Assembly (NCBI GenBank): GCA_002811645.1
Contig: PDIP01000013.1
Span: forward strand, 61,248-125,247
Origin: Corallochytrium limacisporum Hawaii
Taxonomy: Eukaryota > Protista > Pluriformea
DNA: 64,000 nt
Direction: 5' to 3'
Below the pieces are notes generated by a model. That model made no database searches and was not told the DNA's origin. It saw only the letters and a program-made list of their open reading frames with translations. Both the position numbers and the translations under genes were made by a program. Below, in pieces: positions 35,866 to 55,651 of this stretch. Each line of letters opens with the position of its first letter. Position 1 is the first letter of the stretch.

Positions 35866-38800
35866 ATGGACATCTTGTACAATGATATCCTGCGGGAGAT
35901 TGCCCTGCACGGGCTCCAGGGAATGCGTGTGTCTAGACTAAAGAAATATGTTTCAAACCATTCACTACTTGATGGAGATGAGTCTGCATCGGGACCGCTG
36001 CTCCGGAAACTTACCCCATATCTGAAACGTCATTGTAGGTTCTGCGAAGGAACAAGCGCTCATGATGTAGATGATGACGTAGACCTGGCATCAGCGGTGC
36101 TGGAGCCTTATATCTGTAAGGAACTGGGTGCCGGTGATCTACCATCCGCGCTGAGAACGCGCCGGATACGGAAGTATAGTGACGTTGACGACTTCGTTGC
36201 CCATGACAATTGGGTCGTTGTCGCCATTGAAATGGTGCGCTCTCGCACATACGACCATGAGGGTTCTCGGGGCAATTTGTTGACATGCCGGGAGCAAGTA
36301 CCATATCAAGAGTGCATGGATGGGGAAGAATTACTGACGTTGGAAATGGTAGCTCTTCTGGATCGCTTGGGACGGACTAGGTATCGCGGTCTGAACACAT
36401 CCGAAATCGCCAAAGTGTTACAGGTGCGCGTGCCCACTGTAAAGCAGAATATAGCAGTCTTGAAAAATCGAGGCTTGATCAGAAATCAGCGGCAGGATAA
36501 AAGCACGCCGACATCGCTTGCAATTTTTGAAGCCGATAGTGCCTTCCATACGATAGATCCCGCGCATATACAGGATGCAACAGATTTGATCAAAGCAACA
36601 GTTCAGGAGTACCATCGAGAGTGTCCCACGGAAACGGATTCAAAGCATTGGTGGCCAGCGCTCGCTGACGTTGCTGATCGGGCGCAGCAATTGTTAACTC
36701 CGAGTTGTCCCAACGAAGCTCAGCTCGCCGTGACGTACGCACTGAAGGATTTGAAGGTCTCAGGGCAGTTTCGCGAGCCCGTAGCTGTGCAAAAAGATAA
36801 TCACTACGGGAGAAAGGCTCTCCTGCAACGAGTGCCTTTGGTATATGCAATGCCGGACCAATACGCTGCTGATGGATCATCTACGCTCTGGGTAGCTCCA
36901 ACAAGCAGCATTCTCCATGCCATTATCTACGTCGTGCACTACATGCATCGTCACCTCGGTCAAGAGTATGTCCGAAAGACCGATGTAGCCACCGTTCTGG
37001 GGATTTTCCAACGAAAGCACGAAGCTTTCTTCACACACCACATACAAAGGGGCGTACTTGGTGTGCGTGAAATTCAAGCGGGCAGGAATCTTGAGGCCAT
37101 GCTCTTCGTGACAGAAAAAGGTAGGAAAGAATACGGCCTCGAGGATTGGAATAGATCGGAAGGCAAGCATGCCGATGCGTCCATTTCCAATGGTATAAAG
37201 TTGAAGACGGCCATTGACACAGACGACGGCATTAACGATAAGCCTGATTTGGCTGAAGGCAAAATTGATGCACTCATACAACACATCGTCCAACGTCATG
37301 GAGCCGTGGACGAGTCCAGATTAGTTGCGTACGTACAGGATGTACGCCACAGCACACTGGGGTTTAGTTTGAAAAAGACAGCGGTGTTGTCTGCAATGGA
37401 GCGTCTGATTCGCCATGACCAGATCATGAAACGAGAAGAAATTCTGCATACAAAATCGTATGGGAAGGTGAAAGTAGAGACATTGCGCGATATGACACGC
37501 AGTGCAACAAACCCTATATTTGACGCAAGGGCACAAGCGACAAAGGAACGTGTTGCAGCCAGAGTGAAGCCACCAACGGCAAGTGATCTCCTGGTCGATG
37601 TTTTGCCGTCGTCAATCGATGCTGCGGAATTTCCGACTCTCTTGAACCCTTCTCGCCATCCTTGGGCTGACTCTACGACCTTAGCGGACGGTGGACCCCC
37701 ACGTTGGGAACGAGTGTGTATCGTACACCAGCTTTTGTGGGTCGAGACTCACATGCAACGGGCTGCCATGGGTGTGGAAGGAAGGGGTGAGAAGGTTTGG
37801 ATAGACCTGAAGACCTGGATCACATGCTTGCCTCTACCCGTCCTTCAGCTAATCCTGGGCCATGCAGATGATGAGGTCGCAGAATCGTTGCAGGACTTAC
37901 GCGACCAGGAAAAGGGGTGGAAGATATTGGAAATGGGAATGGGTACACTCACGTCTTCCCTGTTTATTCTCAGAGAGCTTGCACTCATCAACACGGAGCC
38001 CCACCCACACCATGCTGCAGAGCTACCTGTAGCGGTGTCTATGGTCGAGGATGTGGTCATGACCCAGACATACAGAAATGCCTTTGCCCAAGTCAGACCC
38101 CGGCTTCGGGGACATGCACCCTCAGTCGGGCAGAGAACTGGACAATGGCCTAGTAGACTGCTCATGTACAAACAGTCTCACCGAGATGCATACTGGGATG
38201 GGCTTCGCGCTTTATGCTGCTATCGTGGCGAACGAAAAGTGCAGATGATGCGAACTTTGGCACCTGTGAACAAGCCTTGGCTGATATCTCTCCTAGGTGC
38301 GAGAAATGTGGATGGATGCTGGGATCGTTCGCAGGTGGTAGCAGGATTCGGTCAGGTGGATCGTGTCGTTGGCGCTGCCATTCTGTCGGCGTCTGTTGCA
38401 CTCTCCAATGTTCCCGATGGGGCGGGTGAAGACGTGGAAGAAATACGTACAAGCATTCTGGAGCCTCTTCAGGGAGAAAAGGAATATCTCTTGGTCAGTG
38501 GGCTGAGCGAAGAGGCTGTGGACCATCTGATCACCCTCATTCTTGAAATCATTCTCGAAGATCTGCAGGAGCCGGGTAGGAGAAAGAGGCTTGACCAGAA
38601 GCGCGTTCTTCTTCGGGTGCTTACCAAACAGCGACCCCAGCGACCGACATGGCACCGAACTGTGTCTGCGCATGTCGGTGAGACACCGGAAATCGCCTTG
38701 GATCAGGAGGAGGAGGTCGTGTACGAGGGATACGAGGTGGATGAGGACCAGGAGGAGGAAGATGAGGAATCGGAGGAAGTGACTGAGGCGGAGGAGGAGT

Positions 38801-40446
38801 CAGAACCACTGGAGCCGGCACATGCACAAGTGGCAAAAGCCGGTCAAGCCACAGTGCGCTTCATGTCCAGGGCAGATCAAGAACAGATAATGCGGAGTCC
38901 GGAATTGCAGGCCATTACGTACACGGGTTGGTGGCCGGAAGTGTCATCCACGACAGTTGCGATTTTTGTGGTTGATCTTGTGCGCGAGGCTCTGAAACGT
39001 CTTCGGGAATCTGACATAATGAACAAGAGTGATGGTGGTGACTTTGGCATGGTTGATGAGGAAGATTTTGCACTGCACTGCAGTGCTGTTGATAGCCTGT
39101 TGGGTACCATGTACGGAGTCTGCGTGGGAGTCATGGCCTTGTCTGTGGATACCAGAACGAATCGACAGCGCAGGGAGGCACGAAGCCAGGGACGGTCGCA
39201 GCTAGCAAAGAGGATATCAACTACTGCACTAGATGCAGATCTGGTTGAGAAGCTACTGTTTGGTGAAGTCATCGCTCGGGTGCGACGGGTTCTGCTTGAC
39301 CTTGGAGAACGAAATGTTGGGGATCTGGCACTGCTTGACTTTATTGAGCTGCGTGTTGAGTTCTTGCTGGCCAGTCCCGGCAGTGTCCAGCGCTTGACCG
39401 CGAATTCATCGCTGCAGCATATCTTGTGTCAGACTGCTCAAGTTGCATGGATCTACGGGGCGCACTGCACGTCGGACGACCAAACGAGAGTCGACATTTG
39501 TGCGTTATACCAGCGCTGTGTGGGTCAGCGGCCTTGGGACCCCGAGACCTATCTCTCACCACCCACAGGAGGCAATCTGGTGCCCCTGACCGCCCAGGAT
39601 CGCCTCAAGCATGTGCTGGCATGGCATGGGCTTGACCCAGATGACGACCTTGCCACACGTCTATGCGCTGGTTTGGTTCAGGCATGGACCACTGGAGACC
39701 AATCACAGCTGGAAGAGCTGAGTCCAACGGAGCGATCTGCCCTTCTGGCATACGCCTTGGCCTCTGGCCAGTACGGTGCTGTTCTCTCTGAATGGAAAGG
39801 CTCAGTGACAATCGATGATAAACGTATCCGCCCGACTCTGTTGCAACACAGTCATGGCACCAATGAGGCAAGCTCCGAAGCGAAGGCAGCGGCTCTGGCC
39901 CAAAAATACGTGCTGCTCACCCGAGGAGAAGTGGGGAGCAAGTCTCCATTGCCACCTGTAGATGAACTCGCCTTTGCCATGGCCTGCATGGTAGACTATA
40001 GTACAACATCCGTCCCGCAAGAGGTGACTTTGTCTATGACACACAAGGAAATTTCCAGTGACGTGTTGCCCGAGCCGCCACCAGCACTAGGCGCCATGGA
40101 TCATGAGGTCTTCTTGAAACTGTGCAAGCACATTCTTTATCTAGTCGGAGACAGTGATGACACTCACAGTGTGACGGTGCAAACCCTTGCCGATGGGCCC
40201 CTATACGGTGTACTGATGGTCGAACAGGTTGCTGGTGTGGTCCAAGACCTGCGCTCGCGGGATCTGCTGGCGCTAGCTGTACCAGACCGTGACTGGCCGC
40301 CAACTTATGGCTCCCTGGGCGAAGCTCTCCAGGCGCGTGCCGGTGATAGGAGCAAGCGTCGCCGCACAGACAGGAACGATGCCAGTACCATGGAGAAACC
40401 GCTGGTGGTGACGGACATGGGCGTACGGTTCCTCCTGTCACAGTAA
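35866..40446 (+). CDS. GTF3C1: probable TFIIIC B-block-binding subunit (GTF3C1/Tfc3), highly divergent
   Basis: N-terminus MDILYNDILREIALHGLQG resembles GTF3C1 MDALESLLDEVALEGLDG; winged-helix-like segment LLDRLGRTRYRG...LKNRGLI; 1526 aa. Confidence 0.7.
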   Translation: MDILYNDILREIALHGLQGMRVSRLKKYVSNHSLLDGDESASGPLLRKLTPYLKRHCRFCEGTSAHDVDDDVDLASAVLEPYICKELGAGDLPSALRTRRIRKYSDVDDFVAHDNWVVVAIEMVRSRTYDHEGSRGNLLTCREQVPYQECMDGEELLTLEMVALLDRLGRTRYRGLNTSEIAKVLQVRVPTVKQNIAVLKNRGLIRNQRQDKSTPTSLAIFEADSAFHTIDPAHIQDATDLIKATVQEYHRECPTETDSKHWWPALADVADRAQQLLTPSCPNEAQLAVTYALKDLKVSGQFREPVAVQKDNHYGRKALLQRVPLVYAMPDQYAADGSSTLWVAPTSSILHAIIYVVHYMHRHLGQEYVRKTDVATVLGIFQRKHEAFFTHHIQRGVLGVREIQAGRNLEAMLFVTEKGRKEYGLEDWNRSEGKHADASISNGIKLKTAIDTDDGINDKPDLAEGKIDALIQHIVQRHGAVDESRLVAYVQDVRHSTLGFSLKKTAVLSAMERLIRHDQIMKREEILHTKSYGKVKVETLRDMTRSATNPIFDARAQATKERVAARVKPPTASDLLVDVLPSSIDAAEFPTLLNPSRHPWADSTTLADGGPPRWERVCIVHQLLWVETHMQRAAMGVEGRGEKVWIDLKTWITCLPLPVLQLILGHADDEVAESLQDLRDQEKGWKILEMGMGTLTSSLFILRELALINTEPHPHHAAELPVAVSMVEDVVMTQTYRNAFAQVRPRLRGHAPSVGQRTGQWPSRLLMYKQSHRDAYWDGLRALCCYRGERKVQMMRTLAPVNKPWLISLLGARNVDGCWDRSQVVAGFGQVDRVVGAAILSASVALSNVPDGAGEDVEEIRTSILEPLQGEKEYLLVSGLSEEAVDHLITLILEIILEDLQEPGRRKRLDQKRVLLRVLTKQRPQRPTWHRTVSAHVGETPEIALDQEEEVVYEGYEVDEDQEEEDEESEEVTEAEEESEPLEPAHAQVAKAGQATVRFMSRADQEQIMRSPELQAITYTGWWPEVSSTTVAIFVVDLVREALKRLRESDIMNKSDGGDFGMVDEEDFALHCSAVDSLLGTMYGVCVGVMALSVDTRTNRQRREARSQGRSQLAKRISTTALDADLVEKLLFGEVIARVRRVLLDLGERNVGDLALLDFIELRVEFLLASPGSVQRLTANSSLQHILCQTAQVAWIYGAHCTSDDQTRVDICALYQRCVGQRPWDPETYLSPPTGGNLVPLTAQDRLKHVLAWHGLDPDDDLATRLCAGLVQAWTTGDQSQLEELSPTERSALLAYALASGQYGAVLSEWKGSVTIDDKRIRPTLLQHSHGTNEASSEAKAAALAQKYVLLTRGEVGSKSPLPPVDELAFAMACMVDYSTTSVPQEVTLSMTHKEISSDVLPEPPPALGAMDHEVFLKLCKHILYLVGDSDDTHSVTVQTLADGPLYGVLMVEQVAGVVQDLRSRDLLALAVPDRDWPPTYGSLGEALQARAGDRSKRRRTDRNDASTMEKPLVVTDMGVRFLLSQ

Positions 40447-46583: not shown

Positions 46584-49500
46584 TTACGATGATGAACTTG
46601 TGGCTTGACCGCTGATCGAGCTGGTCATGATGGACTCCATCTCACGGGTGTACATTTGGTGCAATTCACGGGCCTCACGTACCTCACGGCGTAGATCCTC
46701 GAGGAAGGCATTAGTGCCGCCGGTTGTAGGTGCCGCAGGACCTGCTGGCGCAGAGCTCGTTGAAGTTCCCAGGTGCACGGGCCCGGATGAGGACACTGGT
46801 GCGCCTATGCCACCCGTTGAGGAGTCTAATCCTTCTGCCTGGCGCTGCGCTGCCCAGTCTCGCTCCATGCGGAAGAGAACACGCGCCTTCTCCCGTTCCT
46901 GCTCCGATAGGGACTCATCGTCCGGACCGCTGGGTTGTTGGGAACCACCCCCGGTGGTACTGTCCACACGCCGAGACAGAATTTCTGCTTCTTCAAAGTA
47001 TTGGCGCCGCCGTTCACGAAGACGGCTGTCAGTCTTTTCGTGCATCTTTTGCTGTTCGACCAGCTTTCGCTGGAGTTCTTCTTCCTTCCGCAGAAGTGCG
47101 TCCTCGAAAGCGGCAGCAGCGCGGCGCTCCTCCTCCATGTGCTTCAGGGCTTCCCGCAGGATCTCTTCCTCCTGCTCCAGATCGGTTTCGTCCTCCAGGG
47201 CCTTTGCGGACAGTTGCTCCACAAACTGACGCTCGCGTTGCATGCTCTCAATTTGTGTGAGACGGTCCGCACGCTGCTCGCGTTCCAGATCCAGGCGACG
47301 TCGCTCATCATCGAGAATCCGCTGACGTTCTTTGCTCTGCTGCTGGCGCCATTCCTTGTGCTGCTGCTGCAGGGTGCGCAAGGACTGTTCTTCCTGTGCG
47401 TTCAGAGCGTCCGCCTCACGCTGCAGAGTGTCCACATCCTGGGAGGTAAGAGCCAGGTCACGCTCCTTAAGTACTTGGATATTGCGTTGACGTTCAACTT
47501 TGAGACGCTCCAGGTCCTCATTGAGCGCAGCCATACGCAAATCATGGTTGACCTTCATGTTGTGACGCTCTTGCTGGCGCACGGTCTGCATGCGGGCCAT
47601 TCGCTCCTCGTGCAAGCGAGTTTCCATCTTGTACTTCTGGTCTTCCGCCTGATGTTTCGCCCGTTGGGTCTGAAGTGCCATGTTCTGCTCCTTGCGATGG
47701 TACGCCATTTTCTCGTCTAGCAAGCGCTGGGCAGTATCGGCCTCAGCGGAAATGGCCTGTTCGAACTCCGCTTTCTTGATCTTGAGCTCAATCTCCCGGA
47801 GTTCCATGTCCTCCAGAGCAGCCGACTGCAATTCCCGACGCTGCTTGGACAGGCGCTCGAGTTCGTCGTCAAGGCGTTGCACACGTTGCTCCTGCAGGCG
47901 ACGCTGCTGGGCCACAAAGGCATTGCGCGACTCCTGCATGATCTGTGCTTGTTTGACACGCTCTTCCCGAGCAGCCATATCCAGACCTTGCTGTACCTCG
48001 TATATGCGATCTTCTTCGACCCTCTGCTGCCTACGACGTTCGTCTTCTGCATCGGCCAGAATGGTCTGTTGGCGACTCCACCGGGCCTGTTCCCGCTCGA
48101 TACGCCTCGATTCTTCGCGCAGGTCGGTAATGAGTTCCATGCGCTTAGTGTTCTCCTCTTCCTCCCGCCGGATGGCCTCCCGAGCGCGGACTTGGTAGTC
48201 AACCACAAAACGAGGGTACTTGTTGAATATAGGGTACTGTCCCTGGCCACCTCCGGCACCGCCAGCACTAAGAGGCGAGAACTGTGGGTACAGACCATTG
48301 CGACGTGGGTCCAGGTCCGCCGGCGTGGAGGCAGCCATGCGATAAGCCATCTGCATCAGCTGTGGTACGCTCAAGCTGCCCTGGATCCTGCCAAAGAAAA
48401 AGGCAAAGTCCTCGCGATTGCGACAGCCCAGTAGGGTGCGGCGGAAGTAGCGCAGGATAGCAGTAACGACAATGAGCAGGAAGCCAGGATGATTTGTGAA
48501 GACGTGGTCCATGACAGCCAACCAGTCATCTTTACCGAGAATCTCGGACAGAAAATTCTGTAGCATGCCCCAGGCGTAGACTTTGGAGGTGACCTCAAAC
48601 TTGACAAAGTGCCGCAGGAGTGTCGTATCGTGGTGGCTCAGGAGATTCTCCACACAGTTCAGTACGGCCACCGGCGGATGCGGATAGTAATCAAACCAGT
48701 TGCTGGCCCAATTTGTGATGATTGTGACAACAACCTCAAACGCGGCAAGAGCGTTCTGCTCGTAAGTTTTGACAAAGGGGAACACCAAGCTCGGCAGATA
48801 CGGAACCTCGCCAAAGATGGGGCTCCAGTGGGCTAGTGCGCTGAGCAGCGTCTCCATGTGAGCCAGTAACTTCGGTGACTTGATTGGGTACTTGGATTGT
48901 AAGGTTTTGTACGCATCGTGTGTTCCCAGTGCAGTTAGATGCCGGTATTCATTCCGATTCTCGGGAATCTGCAACAGGAACCGCCAAATCAGTAAACGGT
49001 ACTTCTCCGGGTATTCACCATACTTGCGGAGAATGCCTATGAGTTTTTGCCGGTTGAATATCTTGGAGTCCTCGTCCAGTGTCAGCGGTTCGATTCTCTG
49101 CTGCTGCTGGTCCTTGAGGGCCTTGAGTGGCTGATGCCCGGTGGCAGGGGGAGTGCTCTGCTCGTCGCCTCCTCGTTCAAATTTGACTTGCTTCTCCGAA
49201 ACCTTGACACGTAGAGGAGGAGGCGGCTGTGCCCTGCCAGCACTGACAGCTGTGTTATTTGGCCGAATGACAAAGAAGGTCGGTTTCGGGGTCTTTTTTG
49301 TCATTGTACGATTTCGCCACAATTCGGTCAGATTCCAGAGTAAGACTCCACCATTGTCAATGACGCTGGCCAGATGCCTGCTGCGTGGTCCTACAGTCAT
49401 TGCCCGGAAAGGATCAGACCAAGGCAGGGTTAACTGTAACTTTCCGTTATCTATATCCACAAAAAGAATGGCCCCTGTGGACGCCAAAATGACAATAATA

Positions 49501-50327
49501 CGCTCATCAAAGAACCTAAGCTGCGCAACAGTGCCCTGTGGCACATCTAGGATGCGGTACAGCGCCTGGTCGCCACCCAAATCCCAGATATAGACACTGT
49601 TGCTGTCCGTTCCGGCTACAGCCACGTACCGACCACTCTGTGTCAGTGCAGAGCACCGTAAACTGAATCCCCCTGCATTGAAGCCTTCCAACCGATAGCG
49701 CTGATCAAAGGTGCCAAAGTCCCAGCCGTAGATAGATCCGTCCTCGAGGAATGTCAGCAGGGTGTCACCGGGCGGTACAAAGCATACAGATGCAAGCTTC
49801 ACCCCACCACCTAGGCTGAGCGTCTTGACCCGATGCATGGAATGGGCGTTCCAAATTACTGCGGCGTCCAGAGACCCGGAGAGAATGAAGCGACCTGTGG
49901 TGTGCAATTCCAGAGAATGCACTGGCGCCCGGTGGCCCCGCAGCGTGTGTGGCACCTTGCCATCGCTCCACAAATGCATGGTACCATCCTGCAGGCCAAC
50001 AACAAACGTCGTCGGATTAATGGCCAGCAGTGCCGAGGCTGGTTTGCCGAAGCGGTGTGCGAATTTCCACCGGTTGCGCTGCAGATCCCATACAAACAAA
50101 GTACCCCGCGAATCGACGGTGCCCATGGCCGTCTCTGTCGAAGTGAAAGCGACTGCCGGACCAAAAGTAATTGCATTTCCTCCCTTCTTCAGTGCTTGAG
50201 CGGCAGTCTGTCTATGACACATGTGTGCAACGAGGCCGGGCGGTTGACTACTCGTGCTGCTTGTCGCTCCCGGCCTTGCGGCCGCGATGGACCCGGCTCG
50301 GTGCGTACTGACATCAATTACATTCAT
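46584..50327 (-). CDS. TBC1D31: TBC1D31/WDR67 (WD40 + TBC + coiled coil; centrosomal)
   Basis: N-terminal WD40 repeats, YGEYPEKYRLLIWRFLLQIPEN, LAHWSPIF, YPIFNKYP.FVVDYQ and a long C-terminal coiled coil. Confidence 0.9.
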   Translation of the reverse strand: MNVIDVSTHRAGSIAAARPGATSSTSSQPPGLVAHMCHRQTAAQALKKGGNAITFGPAVAFTSTETAMGTVDSRGTLFVWDLQRNRWKFAHRFGKPASALLAINPTTFVVGLQDGTMHLWSDGKVPHTLRGHRAPVHSLELHTTGRFILSGSLDAAVIWNAHSMHRVKTLSLGGGVKLASVCFVPPGDTLLTFLEDGSIYGWDFGTFDQRYRLEGFNAGGFSLRCSALTQSGRYVAVAGTDSNSVYIWDLGGDQALYRILDVPQGTVAQLRFFDERIIVILASTGAILFVDIDNGKLQLTLPWSDPFRAMTVGPRSRHLASVIDNGGVLLWNLTELWRNRTMTKKTPKPTFFVIRPNNTAVSAGRAQPPPPLRVKVSEKQVKFERGGDEQSTPPATGHQPLKALKDQQQQRIEPLTLDEDSKIFNRQKLIGILRKYGEYPEKYRLLIWRFLLQIPENRNEYRHLTALGTHDAYKTLQSKYPIKSPKLLAHMETLLSALAHWSPIFGEVPYLPSLVFPFVKTYEQNALAAFEVVVTIITNWASNWFDYYPHPPVAVLNCVENLLSHHDTTLLRHFVKFEVTSKVYAWGMLQNFLSEILGKDDWLAVMDHVFTNHPGFLLIVVTAILRYFRRTLLGCRNREDFAFFFGRIQGSLSVPQLMQMAYRMAASTPADLDPRRNGLYPQFSPLSAGGAGGGQGQYPIFNKYPRFVVDYQVRAREAIRREEEENTKRMELITDLREESRRIEREQARWSRQQTILADAEDERRRQQRVEEDRIYEVQQGLDMAAREERVKQAQIMQESRNAFVAQQRRLQEQRVQRLDDELERLSKQRRELQSAALEDMELREIELKIKKAEFEQAISAEADTAQRLLDEKMAYHRKEQNMALQTQRAKHQAEDQKYKMETRLHEERMARMQTVRQQERHNMKVNHDLRMAALNEDLERLKVERQRNIQVLKERDLALTSQDVDTLQREADALNAQEEQSLRTLQQQHKEWRQQQSKERQRILDDERRRLDLEREQRADRLTQIESMQRERQFVEQLSAKALEDETDLEQEEEILREALKHMEEERRAAAAFEDALLRKEEELQRKLVEQQKMHEKTDSRLRERRRQYFEEAEILSRRVDSTTGGGSQQPSGPDDESLSEQEREKARVLFRMERDWAAQRQAEGLDSSTGGIGAPVSSSGPVHLGTSTSSAPAGPAAPTTGGTNAFLEDLRREVREARELHQMYTREMESIMTSSISGQATSSSS

Positions 50328-51339
50328 CGCTCCGTGTCTGTGTACAACCGTTTTAAGAATAAATCCTTTGATATTGACACTTCCCGTTCCTTACGTTGTC
50401 ATGGACATATTCACCATCGAACAAATCTGCACAGCGACAAGTGGGATTCCGTGTTCACCTTGCCTTATAGGAAGTGGCGCTGTGGTGCTGTTGTGCTGCA
50501 CGATATTTGGGTAGTGTAACTCATTTCATAGGATTCAGAAGTAGCTTTTCGACCGCATGACAGTCGAACCAAATAGAATGATCCGGAGAAACACCCAGCG
50601 TACATCCGTTATTGCCGCACAGCGCTCATCGTCCATGTACTTTGAGACCCGCGGGGCCGGCACTTCGTCCGGACCCAAAGGAAAAGGGAGTCTCAATAAA
50701 ATGTGGCGACCAGGCTACCCAGCCGCCCCGGGGGTCCCGGGGGAGGGGGGTGGTCACAAATGGCTGACCTCGGCCCTGCGCGAGTTGGGATGTAGTGAGA
50801 GACCGGGCAGTTTTTCTTCAGTCCGCCGGGCGATGCGAGACCCTCAAGAAAAAAAGAAAAAAGAATGGGCCTCACGCTATTTGCAGAGACCCACCTTCTC
50901 TCTCATCTGCCCCGGTCCCTCCAAAGCTCTTTCTCGAGCCATGGACCGACAACGCGGAGCGAACAGTTTGAACCGGCCCGTCCCCATCATATACTTTTAT
51001 TACCGACAGATTTTTTCCTTTTCGGAAATATTTCTCAGGTTTACCCCTTCCCCTCCCCTACCGTACCCACCCCCTCCGGCAACTTTCAAACTCCCCGGTG
51101 AAAAGCGCGCCAAAATATTCCCTCGGCCCCCGCGGGAGTTAAGCAAAGGGGAGCAAAAGGGGGTCCGGGAATATGCGAGCCGGTTGGTAACCACTGCACT
51201 GCGCAAGAGAATACGCCGAAGCCTGCCTGAGACCCAAAACCGAAAAAAAAAAAAAAAGAGAGGGGCGACAGGGGAGGGAGAGAACGGCGAGAGAAACTAT
51301 TTCGATAGAGTACAAATGGGCCCAACAAAAAAAAAAGGC

Positions 51340-51347
51340 AAAAAAAA
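51340..51347 (-). terminator. RNA polymerase III oligo-T terminator of tRNA-Cys
   Basis: T8 run on the minus strand 2 nt after the discriminator base, followed by a second T-run. Confidence 0.8.
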
Positions 51348-51349
51348 TG

Positions 51350-51444
51350 AGGAGCCATCGTGAATTTCGCACCGCAACTGCGGTGTTTCGAACACGAGAC
51401 CTGCTGAGCTGCAATCAGCCGCTCTACCGCTGAGCTATAGCTCC
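51350..51444 (-). tRNA. trnC-GCA: tRNA-Cys(GCA) with a 23-nt T-loop (59/60) intron
   Basis: Acceptor GGAGCTA/TGGCTCC, D-arm GCTC-AGCGGTA-GAGC, anticodon arm GCTGA-TTGCAGC-TCAGC, variable loop AGGTC, T-stem TCGTG/CACGA and U73 discriminator (a Cys identity element). The T-loop is 30 nt instead of 7. Confidence 0.93.
51364..51386 (-). other. bulge-helix-bulge (BHB) tRNA intron
   Basis: Intron ACACCGCAGTTGCGGTGCGAAAT; central helix TTCG:CGAA, bulges AAA and ATT, outer helices T-stem and CACCGC:GCGGTG. Confidence 0.85.
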
Positions 51445-52266
51445 TTCGGTTATTTCGCTATAACCGTTTCATTACTGCCAAAAATAAGTATATATACTAT
51501 TGTAGTAACCGCTTTTGGTGGGCAGGTAATATCCGGCGTAGTGTTATTTTGGATACTGTGGAATAGTGAATATACTGGAGCTGTTCGCGCGTGTGTGTTG
51601 GATTCCCTTGCTATAATGGAACTACTGTAGCAACCGACTGCAGCGAACTGTCGATTTCTATACTCCTTCAACCAGCATCCTCGCCAATATTCCGTATATT
51701 AAAATTACCAGTGCTGTATCCCCTCGCACAGAACTGGCGACGGGATAGAAATCAAGCACCGTAGCAAACCTACCAATGGTCTTCTGATGAGAAGCCTTGT
51801 GTCCAAGCCCTTTGTGCCCGATGGAGTAATCAGCATGTCAACCAAATCTCCTCCATAGATCTTCCAGGCCCATTGATCTGAACAGGGGTTCGTCCCGATC
51901 ACGGGGAGGACAAGGGCGTGTGGGTAGATGGGAGCCCTCGGAGGCCCTGAAACCTGGCCAGCCAAAACTACCCCTCACTCTCCCCTCTTTGTGCGCACGT
52001 ACGGGTTTGGCTTGTCTAGGTGCGTGGCTTGTCGTGCTCAGAGGAGGCATGGCTGTGAGGAGATTGTGGGATGCATCGATGCCTTCGAATTAAATACATG
52101 GTCTCACAGAGAATCCGGTCACCTTTGCCGCTGCTTGGTAATGGACAACTCTATTCGATGGCAATGGTACTCAAGACATCCCAACCTGCGCATCGACCCA
52201 TATGATAATACTGAAACATGTACATTACGAATAGATCAAAAACGGACTGGATATGGACAGAACACC

Positions 52267-53451
52267 ATGGCTCCCATACCACAAAAGGCAAAACGTGCCT
52301 GGGCTGATGGCTGCTACGACATGATGCACTTTGGCCACGCCAACAGTCTGCGCCAAGCTAACGAAATGTGCGAGCATTTGGTTGTCGGGGTACATAGTGA
52401 TGCAGAGATAGCAAGACACAAGGGTCCGCCAGTCATGAACGAACAGGAACGGTACCGCATGGTCAGGGCGTGCAAATGGGCAGATGAAGTGGTTGAGGGC
52501 GTACCCTACGTCACATCCGTACACACTCTGAACACCTATGAATGTGAAATCTGCGTCCATGGCGACGACATAACACTGTCTGCGGACGGAAGTGATTCAT
52601 ACGCTGAGGTGAAACAGGCGAACAGATACCGCGAGTGCAAGCGTACCAGTGGTATCAGCTCCACTGATCTCATTGGTCGCATGATGTTACTGACTAAGCG
52701 ACATCACATCATGGCTGACCCGCAAGAGCAGTCCTTACAAGGTTCACCTTGCACATCCACGACCGGCTGCTTGTCCGCAGAAAACGGCCTGGCGCAGTTC
52801 CTGAGCGACCAGCAGCCCCCCAAACCCGGTGACCGTGTGGTTTACATCGGTGCAGGCTTTGATCTTTTCCACGTTGGCCATTTGGACCTGCTGGAGGCGG
52901 CCAAGAACCACGGAGACTACGTTGTAGTCGGTCTGCACGACGACAAAACAATCAATAGTTACATGGGCCTAAATTATCCCATAATGAATATCAATGAACG
53001 TGCCCTGGGTTTGTTGGCCTGCCAATATGCAGACGCGGTCATTATGGGAGCGCCTTTGGAGGTCTCGACGCAAATTTTAGATCAGTTCAACGTTTCAACA
53101 GTCTTGCACGGAACCGGTTGGGAGGACATGAGTCTGGACGCTGGAAAGCGCAGAACGATATACGCTGAAGCCATCAAAAAGGGCATCTACAAGGAAGTCG
53201 ACATGGGGCAGAGTCTGTCCACGCCTCAGGTCCTTGAGCGCATCACACGCCAGTACCAGAGCTACGTCCGGCGCAATCGTCGCAAGCAGACGCGGGAGCG
53301 GGAAGCTTACGAGGCGTTGATGCGCACGGCTGCCAGCACCAATGCAACAAGCACGCGATCGCTGTCATCGTCGTCGTCGTCGGATGCTGGGCAGGAGCAA
53401 GATGAATTGTCTCACCAACCACCCGCCACTGAACTGCAAGGCGCCCTTTGA
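52267..53451 (+). CDS. PCYT2: ethanolamine-phosphate cytidylyltransferase
   Basis: Two cytidylyltransferase domains: DGCYDMMHFGH...RTSGISSTDLIGRM and GFDLFHVGH...YPIMNINER; start set to the ATG at 52267. Confidence 0.95.
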   Translation: MAPIPQKAKRAWADGCYDMMHFGHANSLRQANEMCEHLVVGVHSDAEIARHKGPPVMNEQERYRMVRACKWADEVVEGVPYVTSVHTLNTYECEICVHGDDITLSADGSDSYAEVKQANRYRECKRTSGISSTDLIGRMMLLTKRHHIMADPQEQSLQGSPCTSTTGCLSAENGLAQFLSDQQPPKPGDRVVYIGAGFDLFHVGHLDLLEAAKNHGDYVVVGLHDDKTINSYMGLNYPIMNINERALGLLACQYADAVIMGAPLEVSTQILDQFNVSTVLHGTGWEDMSLDAGKRRTIYAEAIKKGIYKEVDMGQSLSTPQVLERITRQYQSYVRRNRRKQTREREAYEALMRTAASTNATSTRSLSSSSSSDAGQEQDELSHQPPATELQGAL

Positions 53452-53548
53452 GACAGACCCGCAGACTCCTTGCACATTTCAATGATATCAATGCATCATA
53501 GAGTACATATATTGTAGCATAATTAAAGTCTTACTGCAAAGTTCCTAT

Positions 53549-55651
53549 CTACTTTAACTTCGCCTTCACCTTCTTCGCCCGCATGTGGGTGCCCTCCGTA
53601 CGGCCAATCTTGCGCAGCCATTCATCATGCCAGATGAAGAAATTGCATCTAGCGTTCCTATCATTCTTTTCTCCCTTAGGCCGACAGCAAACCCAGAACT
53701 TGCGGTCGTGGTTCTCACCGCCATTCTTCACGACGCGCTCGACACAGGGCTCCTTGTGTCCCGTGCATTTGGGCTTTGGAATTGGTTTGAAAAGGCCCAT
53801 GAAGCTCTTGTCGTTTTCCTGCCTTGGCATTGACGGGAAGGCACCCAGTGGTTCTGTGGCGGACTGGGTAGTCTGTGGCGTCGTCTCTGGTGCAGCTCTT
53901 GGCTGTGATTCCTCCTTCGGCACTAGCTTCTCCGGCTGCGATATACCCTTCATGACCGCAAATAGGGTCGCCTGCTTCTTTTGCCGCTTGGCTGGCGGGG
54001 GTTGTGTTCCCATTGCTGAGGATGACTGAGAAGTCAGTGATGGTACACTCTGCGTCGGAGTCTGCGAATCCGTCTGCGTCGAAATCTGACTGGCAGTAGG
54101 CTCTAGTGTCTGAGTCATAGAGACGTCCACAGAGATTGTAGTGGTGCCCGCTGTTCCGCTGGCAAACAGCTGCCGAATACTACGTTGGCGCGGCGCTGAT
54201 GCCATTTGTAGGCGTGCGCTAAGCTCTGGGATTCTCTCCGTCTCTTCGCTTGAAACATTCAGCTCTGCGTACACTGGGCAATGATCCGAGCCCATTACTT
54301 CTGGCATAATGTCCGCTCCAGTCAACTTGCTTTTCAACCCTTTTGAAATGAGCACAAAGTCAATGCGCGCACCATAGTTTGTCAACCTCGCCGAAGTCAC
54401 GCTGTCCCAGCATGTGTACGCCTTCAGTCGGTTCGGGTGATATATGCGGAAAGAGTCCAGAAACTCAAAAGGGATCTGGCTGTCGTCACTGTCCAAGTGC
54501 CCAGGGAACAGATCCAATCCCATCAGCATAGCTTTCGGTATGTCATTCGTGCTGCCATCAGCCCCCGTTCCGTTCTCCTTGGCCACAGCAATTGCATCAT
54601 CCTCATCATCACTGTCGTCGACATTGATTCGCCTACCCTGGCCGGTGGGAGGTACTTCACAGCGTATGTGCTCCATCCATTTCGCTGAGAGTGCTGATTT
54701 GCCCCGTACCCGCCCGCTATCGCCTCCAGGCGGCGCATAGTCCGGCCGTGCTGCAATGTATTCCTGTGCATCCCACAGAAAGCTACGACCAAGCATTAAT
54801 GACCGCATCCATTGCCGATGGATGTCTGTCGTCCATGACAGTAGATCCGCTTGGGCCATGGCAGTTGCTTCACCACTGCGGTGCTTTTGGTAGGCAGTCA
54901 TGAGTTCGCACGTGTCCAGTGTGAGGTAACAGACGTTCAGATCGCCCGTGATCACCACCTCTCGACCAGCTGCCCGGAACTGCCGAACACGTTCAAGGAG
55001 GCAGGAATGGTATATCATTTTAAAGAGCGTCCGACCAAACGATCCGCCATTTGGCAGGTAACAATTGAACAGTACAAATGCACCATGGTCCGTGATCACG
55101 CACCTGCCTTCATTGTCGACCTTTTCTTGCTCTGCAGGACTTAGCCAATCTTGTATACGGCATCGTTGATTGATGGACAGCGCATGGTGTATATCGCACT
55201 CCTCACCCTGACTACTGTTCGATGTTGCCGGTGGCTTGCTCCATCGACGGCCCGTCAGCCCATCTTCCGCTGCAACCGGTACAGCACCGGGCGAACGACA
55301 CACCGTTGCCACCCCACTGTACCCGACGATCGATTCAGCGAAGGACGGAAAACATTCCCAGCCATGGAGCTGGTCGTCATGGGTTTGGTGGTCAGTCTCA
55401 TCGTAGACGGACCCTTGTCCGGCGAGCCAGGGACTCAGATCTTTGCCACGCACCAGCTTGGTCTCCTGCAAACACACAATGTCTGCGCCTAGGCTATCCA
55501 TCATGGCCCGCATGCTGCCAAACCCAGGTCTCTGCATTGCCCGATCGACCTTGAGCGCTGCAGCGGCCTCCCTGGCACCCTCGCCGCCCTCGCCGCCGGA
55601 CGAGAATAAAATGGGTTTCAGCCCATTCACATTCCAAGAAAGGATCTTCAT
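53549..55651 (-). CDS. APEX2: AP endonuclease 2 (ExoIII family + GRF zinc finger)
   Basis: SWNVNG, CLQETK, GDLNV, RIDF and SDHCP motifs; PIP-like QRSIRQLF/QATLF; C-terminal zf-GRF. Confidence 0.92.
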   Translation of the reverse strand: MKILSWNVNGLKPILFSSGGEGGEGAREAAAALKVDRAMQRPGFGSMRAMMDSLGADIVCLQETKLVRGKDLSPWLAGQGSVYDETDHQTHDDQLHGWECFPSFAESIVGYSGVATVCRSPGAVPVAAEDGLTGRRWSKPPATSNSSQGEECDIHHALSINQRCRIQDWLSPAEQEKVDNEGRCVITDHGAFVLFNCYLPNGGSFGRTLFKMIYHSCLLERVRQFRAAGREVVITGDLNVCYLTLDTCELMTAYQKHRSGEATAMAQADLLSWTTDIHRQWMRSLMLGRSFLWDAQEYIAARPDYAPPGGDSGRVRGKSALSAKWMEHIRCEVPPTGQGRRINVDDSDDEDDAIAVAKENGTGADGSTNDIPKAMLMGLDLFPGHLDSDDSQIPFEFLDSFRIYHPNRLKAYTCWDSVTSARLTNYGARIDFVLISKGLKSKLTGADIMPEVMGSDHCPVYAELNVSSEETERIPELSARLQMASAPRQRSIRQLFASGTAGTTTISVDVSMTQTLEPTASQISTQTDSQTPTQSVPSLTSQSSSAMGTQPPPAKRQKKQATLFAVMKGISQPEKLVPKEESQPRAAPETTPQTTQSATEPLGAFPSMPRQENDKSFMGLFKPIPKPKCTGHKEPCVERVVKNGGENHDRKFWVCCRPKGEKNDRNARCNFFIWHDEWLRKIGRTEGTHMRAKKVKAKLK

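Follow-up and report, generated by a model that had tools for sequence, protein, structure and literature searches.

A predicted archaeal-type intron at position 59/60 of the nuclear tRNA-Cys(GCA) gene of Corallochytrium limacisporum

The window analysed here, a stretch of 64,000 nucleotides of the Corallochytrium limacisporum genome, carries a tRNA-Cys(GCA) gene on its minus strand. Positions 51350-51444 of this strand fold into a full cloverleaf, with 7/7 pairs in the acceptor stem, 4/4 in the D stem, 5/5 in the anticodon stem and 5/5 in the T stem. The GCA anticodon (51412-51410) lies in a contiguous 7-nt anticodon loop, and the discriminator, at 51350, is U73, the identity base of tRNA-Cys. 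From 5' to 3', the features of the locus are the following:

51479-51496, minus strand: upstream TATA and T-tract element, 52 nt 5' of the gene; candidate Pol III promoter element
51387-51444, minus strand: 5' exon (tRNA positions 1-59, 58 nt), comprising acceptor 5' strand, D arm, anticodon arm, variable loop, T-stem 5' strand and T-loop bases 54-59
51427-51437, minus strand: A box (positions 8-19), read from the sequence
51410-51412, minus strand: anticodon GCA (Cys), read from the sequence
51385-51393, minus strand: B box GTTCGAAAC, whose final two bases come from the intron
51364-51386, minus strand: 23-nt intron at 59/60, with splice sites predicted by the bulge-helix-bulge (BHB) rule; in order, one bulge base, a 6-bp hairpin with a 4-nt loop (h'), the CGAA strand and two bulge bases
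51350-51363, minus strand: 3' exon (positions 60-73, 14 nt), comprising U60, T-stem 3' strand, acceptor 3' strand and U73
51327-51347, minus strand: Pol III terminator, T8 (51347-51340) followed by T10 (51336-51327)

The T-loop of this gene is 30 nt long. In the predicted pairing, a 4-bp central helix, TTCG:CGAA (4/4), is framed by two 3-nt bulges on opposite strands, AAA and ATT, and by outer helices, of which the inner one, h', has 6 bp and is closed by AGTT. Splice sites were predicted by the BHB rule, which places the cut after the second base of each bulge. The rule yields a predicted intron of 23 nt (51386-51364) between exons of 58 and 14 nt, and the predicted cuts restore a canonical tRNA-Cys with a 7-nt T-loop (54-59 plus U60) and 12/12 stem pairs. 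The pairing between exons was verified from their genomic coordinates; the next best register for the 3' exon gives 10/12 pairs as compared to 12/12. The intron site is 59/60 and not 37/38, one base 3' of the anticodon, where canonical eukaryotic introns are located. A preliminary description of the locus had reported a tRNA-Cys(GCA) with a strict BHB in the T-loop, from which the rule would remove 23 nt to leave a canonical T-loop, and had noted intact A and B boxes, U73 and an oligo-T terminator; each of these points holds exactly. A self-splicing group I or II intron was ruled out, since the insert has 23 nt and such introns require a catalytic core of hundreds of bases. In an Rfam search of the window, tRNA was the only family matched. 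The idea that the intron always completes the B box was also rejected, as this holds for only 3/7 of the genes with such inserts described below.

Folding calculations are consistent with this architecture. For the isolated T-arm, the minimum free energy (MFE) fold is the complete outer helix-BHB-inner helix motif (hBHBh'), at -16.7 kcal/mol (z -3.2; 0/200 shuffles as good). For the whole precursor, the cloverleaf with BHB lies at -37.9 kcal/mol versus -38.5 kcal/mol for the MFE fold, and pairs of the T, central and inner helices form with probabilities of about 0.8-1.0, except for one terminal T-stem pair at 0.5. A hairpin immediately upstream of the gene (51445-51466) is no more stable than expected by chance (z -0.6).

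Standard searches read the locus differently. ARAGORN and Rfam both place a 72-nt tRNA at 51373-51444, a mis-call in which the intron serves as a decoy 3' end. The gene might then work without any splicing, either with the insert retained or as this shorter tRNA, perhaps after editing. The decoy indeed has a normal-looking T-loop and scores 36.6 bits in Rfam, but it forms only 5/7 acceptor pairs and 4/5 T pairs, and its position 73 is a G where tRNA-Cys has U. In addition, the terminator sits after the distal exon, its T8 run starting 3 nt past position 73, and 5/6 of the other genes with such inserts yield no decoy call. A retained insert, for its part, would pair off bases 54-57, which are needed by the D-loop/T-loop elbow. 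We therefore consider function without splicing very improbable. The earlier expectation that standard scans overlook such genes is borne out for 5 of the 7 genes having 59/60 inserts, which are absent from the Rfam genome list; the tRNA-Cys gene itself is mis-called, not missed. In opisthokont genomes, essential genes can thus be overlooked or mis-called when tRNAs are annotated in eukaryote mode.

The assembly (24.1 Mb, with nearly intron-free protein genes) agrees with what is described for C. limacisporum (PMC5560861), a holozoan, and one protein that it encodes is identical to a 'Clim' entry in EukProt; the preliminary description had taken the host for an animal relative, and so it is. 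A TATA and T-tract element is present at most 110 nt upstream in 33/42 tRNA genes versus 0.5% of control windows, for a pattern defined after the genes were seen. It lies anywhere between -23 and -107 relative to the mature 5' end, which points to Pol III initiation driven by an upstream element and to long leaders. The window also encodes, at 35866-40446 (plus strand), a 1526-aa ORF corresponding to the B-box-binding subunit of TFIIIC (GTF3C1-like; Pfam PF04182, E 5e-4; Atlas 0.93). Neighbours of the tRNA-Cys gene are a WD40 and TBC protein (TBC1D31-like; 46584-50327, minus strand), a two-domain cytidylyltransferase (52267-53451, plus strand) and an exonuclease/endonuclease/phosphatase protein with a GRF zinc finger (APE2-like; 53549-55651, minus strand). 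A look-up for a related contig via a neighbouring gene gave no match.

As for the presence of the insert in sequencing, which was to be checked, the contigs of both DNA runs contain it with no differences; these runs probably share the sample of the assembly and are not independent of it. The contigs of two RNA-like runs skip the tRNA-Cys gene and show no joints. The second of these runs (X4) shows 24 single-base differences in window positions 49500-54500, which are consistent with a second strain.

No second nuclear tRNA-Cys gene was found by a DNA search (one locus), an Rfam scan, an A-box and anticodon pattern or a D-arm pattern, these searches being non-exhaustive. The A-box and anticodon pattern gave 62 matches (20 cut out and rejected, 42 screened by eye only), among which the gene of the window and one gene on a mitochondrial contig are the only tRNA-like ones. 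The latter contig, C286, appears mitochondrial, with about 25 tRNA genes including Trp-TCA (labelled Sec by ARAGORN) and an uninterrupted Cys-GCA, the sole other Cys gene found in the assembly. The search for an intronless copy elsewhere, as proposed with the preliminary description, thus returned none in the nuclear contigs, as far as these searches reach, and one in C286. Likewise, no uninterrupted nuclear gene for Arg-ACG, Leu-CAA, Ser-CGA or any Gly anticodon was found in our non-exhaustive inventory, and the three Gly genes that turned up each carry an insert. In the Rfam genome search, 63/584 candidates were scored and an ordinary Val-CAC gene was missed. Cys and Gly codons represent 1.7% and 6.6%, respectively, of the 8,340 codons counted in the window. 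The tRNA-Cys gene is probably a functional, single-copy nuclear gene, and the Cys and Gly tRNAs of Corallochytrium appear to rely on T-loop splicing.

The tRNA-Cys gene has counterparts. Among the 48 nuclear tRNA genes that we read, 30 are uninterrupted, 11 have 37/38 introns (25-227 nt) and 7 have inserts at 59/60:

Cys-GCA, minus strand, window 51364-51386: 23-nt insert
Arg-ACG, locus L044: 52-nt insert, h' of 1 bp
Leu-CAA, locus L073: 32-nt insert
Gly-GCC, two genes, loci L079 and L081: inserts of 50 and 49 nt
Gly-TCC, locus L080: 45-nt insert, h' displaced
Ser-CGA, locus L116: 36-nt insert

In 7/7 of these genes, 12/12 T and acceptor pairs form across the insert, the central helix is complete (4/4) with two 3-nt bulges, U54 pairs with a purine at intron position -3, and U60 and a downstream T run are present. 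The inner helix is less constant: h' has 4-8 bp in 5/7 genes, but 1 bp in Arg-ACG, and it is displaced in Gly-TCC. The local energy minima of the first Gly-GCC insert and of the Gly-TCC insert are other folds. Except for the Gly-GCC pair, whose introns have diverged while keeping the helix ends, the introns are mutually unrelated in sequence. A shared origin was rejected beyond this pair, the similarity of the second Gly-GCC and Gly-TCC introns (p ~0.01 among 21 comparisons) being unconvincing. Nineteen other matches to the BHB pattern in the genome are not tRNAs.

An insertion or a T-arm duplication could mimic a BHB by chance, via the self-complementary TTCGAA, in a pseudogene whose role is filled by an undetected Cys gene. 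The intron end does resemble a T arm in the Cys and Leu genes, and the tRNA inventory is incomplete. Moreover, the Gly T-loop-intron pattern had a single metagenome match, on contig L201, which proved a false positive: the tRNA-Gly there, of vertebrate type, is intact, and part of its T arm is duplicated downstream. This unrelated contig looks like vertebrate host DNA, possibly human, and presumably bird-like as judged by a repeat end. A Cys pattern had no match in viral contigs. Against a chance mimic, seven genes show the same exact register, with unrelated inserts and perfect stems, promoter and terminator signals are present, and all the Gly genes found are interrupted. The probability that a shuffled intron gives an in-register helix is 0.010, 0.039, 0.030 and 0.033 for the four genes considered, or ~4e-7 jointly; this value covers only genes found without a BHB filter (Arg, Leu and Gly genes, by Rfam or D-arm patterns) and excludes Cys and Ser as ascertained. 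A pseudogene is thus hardly credible. The earlier view of a real intron gains support, as this is the only nuclear Cys gene found and six more genes are alike. The tRNA-Cys intron is very probably a member of a genome-wide 59/60 set, and we hold it highly likely that its insert is a real spliced intron, in a gene that is very probably essential.

The genome encodes exactly two PF01974 proteins, TSEN34 and TSEN2. TSEN34 (E 3e-26 to human) has a Tyr/His/Lys triad and an Arg/Trp tweezer that align with those of the human enzyme, and TSEN2 (E 2e-22 to human) also has an aligned Tyr/His/Lys triad. TSEN54 is present (Pfam PF12928, E 1e-11; PDB, E 4e-13), with a match that starts from human residue ~41 and an N-terminal extension. 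RtcB is encoded as well. Hence, of the machinery that the preliminary description had singled out for inspection, TSEN2, TSEN34, TSEN54 and RtcB are all found, and TSEN15 has a weak candidate. This highly diverged protein, P0001 (L159:964-1593, plus strand), scores below the Pfam cut-off (E 0.022) and has a PDB E of ~1 to human TSEN15, to which both Sen15 hallmark stretches align, in order. Its best three Atlas clusters are Sen15 (0.81-0.82; a lead only), no homologue was detectable in 1.8 billion representatives, and its fold model (pLDDT 38) is unusable. Pfam, PDB and Atlas all point the same way, at a sub-threshold level, and the identification of P0001 as TSEN15 is weak. No further archaeal-type EndA was found in the genome, in which PF01974 matches only these two genes. 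An endonuclease of the EndA/TSEN family and a ligase, both required by BHB introns, are encoded.

Given a real spliced intron, native TSEN is with good probability the enzyme that cuts it. TSEN2 and TSEN34 are the only EndA-family catalytic genes found and their triads are intact, which designates TSEN as the putative cutter. The intron could also be real and be removed by a TSEN2-TSEN34 sub-complex, a three-subunit enzyme like the one proposed for C. merolae, or another nuclease. The below-cut-off score of P0001 leaves room for a smaller enzyme, C. merolae has such introns with no recognisable Sen15 (PMC3728597), and a catalytic dimer was proposed for this alga (PMC3978253). On the other hand, P0001 matches both Sen15 hallmarks and leads to Sen15 clusters, and another nuclease is at odds with the two PF01974 genes and the lack of any extra archaeal-type enzyme. 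Removal by something other than four-subunit TSEN is, in our view, unlikely.

Taken as a whole, a functional single-copy tRNA-Cys(GCA) gene with a protein-spliced 59/60 intron cut by native TSEN is the likely reading of the sequence data. Pol III would transcribe the gene from its intact A and B boxes, probably with help from the TATA element, and stop at the T run. T-loop bases 54-57 are predicted to pair with the intron end, forming in succession a stem, a 3-nt bulge, a 4-bp helix, a 3-nt bulge and a stem. Native TSEN would cut both bulges and RtcB would ligate the exons, giving back the 7-nt T-loop. The 59/60 and 37/38 sites share the same register: in both, a 5-bp stem carries a 7-base loop and the intron follows the 6th base of that loop. 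Position 59/60 is thus probably the T-arm equivalent of 37/38, which would explain why native TSEN cuts there, the T arm imitating an intron-bearing anticodon arm, and the pair between U54 and the purine at intron -3 could play the geometric role of the anticodon-intron (A-I) pair. At 59/60 the enzyme would have no ruler contact with the body of the tRNA and would need a strict helix instead, and since TTCR is nearly invariant, the same site could be used in any tRNA gene. The TTCGAA loop being self-complementary, one may speculate that the introns arose by local duplication.

In vivo splicing of BHB introns located in the T-loop is documented for C. merolae (PMC3728597). As in this red alga, the Corallochytrium genes are nuclear, have a T-loop hBHBh', an upstream TATA-like element and a T terminator, and are missed by standard scans, and TSEN2, TSEN34 and TSEN54 are present. 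However, Corallochytrium belongs to Holozoa and is not an alga, its seven introns are all at 59/60 instead of being scattered over the D and T arms, it has a TSEN15 candidate, and it keeps a B-box core and encodes a TFIIIC B-box-binding subunit, a protein not found in C. merolae. Position 59/60 is a listed site of archaeal non-canonical tRNA introns (PMC4090602). With those of Thermoproteales and Asgard archaea, the Corallochytrium introns share a strict BHB, the same site and recurrence across isoacceptors; in contrast, the Corallochytrium gene is a eukaryotic Pol III gene and archaeal EndA was not found in the genome. The introns of different isoacceptors have no clear sequence similarity, and thus give no sign of recent transposition.

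The geometry of the anticodon-intron pair in canonical introns has been described (PMC8479045). The Corallochytrium T-loop introns resemble these 37/38 introns by their 5-bp stem, the cut after the 6th of 7 bases and the pyrimidine-purine pair at -6/-3, and differ by their location and by a strict instead of relaxed helix. The rest of the canonical four-subunit system is also recognisable, with TSEN2/34/54 orthologues having conserved catalytic and tweezer residues, RtcB, and 11 canonical introns. The four-subunit TSEN of animals, fungi and amoebozoa is held to remove only 37/38 introns (2023 review, PMC10485636), and eukaryotic exceptions to 37/38 are limited to certain unicellular algae (2026 review, PMC13578239). 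In vitro, Xenopus, yeast and human TSEN cleave stem-loop mini substrates (PMC10275265), and S. pombe TSEN cleaved a mini-BHB very poorly (PMC8707768). Such introns in Corallochytrium or any opisthokont are unreported in the literature searched, which largely lay outside subscription journals. The predicted Corallochytrium 59/60 intron has every testable feature of the archaeal/red-algal non-canonical BHB class; it is a known intron class in a lineage and an enzyme context where it is not expected. A cultured holozoan with putative T-loop introns puts the 37/38-only rule for four-subunit TSEN directly to the test. Its precursors could serve as natural substrates in studies of when TSEN can do without the ruler mechanism, and its enzyme lends itself to close comparison with human TSEN, in which mutations lead to pontocerebellar hypoplasia.

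Helix strictness distinguishes the two sites. A full 4/4 central helix is present in 3/9 of the 37/38 introns examined, with the A-I pair in 9/9, as compared to 4/4 helices in 7/7 of the 59/60 introns; these relaxed and strict helices fit two recognition modes, with the ruler operating at 37/38 and a local BHB being recognised at 59/60. The preliminary description had proposed position-independent splicing, which goes beyond the evidence of the tRNA-Cys gene, all seven introns read being at the one site, 59/60. Elsewhere in the genome, at C242:178012-178056 (minus strand), an acceptor 3' end lies 26 nt before an Ala 5' end. This is the sole match of the search (control 0); its bases are consistent with G3-U70, and a rough chance estimate is less than one match. 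The arrangement bears the signature of a circularly permuted tRNA-Ala gene, with modest support, and fits the absence of a contiguous Ala-CGC gene among those found in the genome search. We incline somewhat towards a complete four-subunit, human-type TSEN that would cut a BHB at any position in vivo, in T-loop introns of at least seven genes as well as in permuted and doubly interrupted tRNA genes. If true, a position-free TSEN would undo the coupling that has been proposed between the type of enzyme and the site of the intron, and no such system would have been reported before in animals, fungi or their relatives.

Other unusual tRNA loci were seen in the assembly. The 5' halves of an initiator-like Met-CAT (C22:166528-166557, minus strand) and of a Leu-TAA (C238:23541-23571, plus strand) were both missed by the Rfam genome search. 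Arg-TCT (L162, C278) has a 133-nt 37/38 intron and A at T-loop position 54, and Ile-TAT (L161, C268) has a 227-nt 37/38 intron containing two T5 runs, which Pol III has to pass without terminating.
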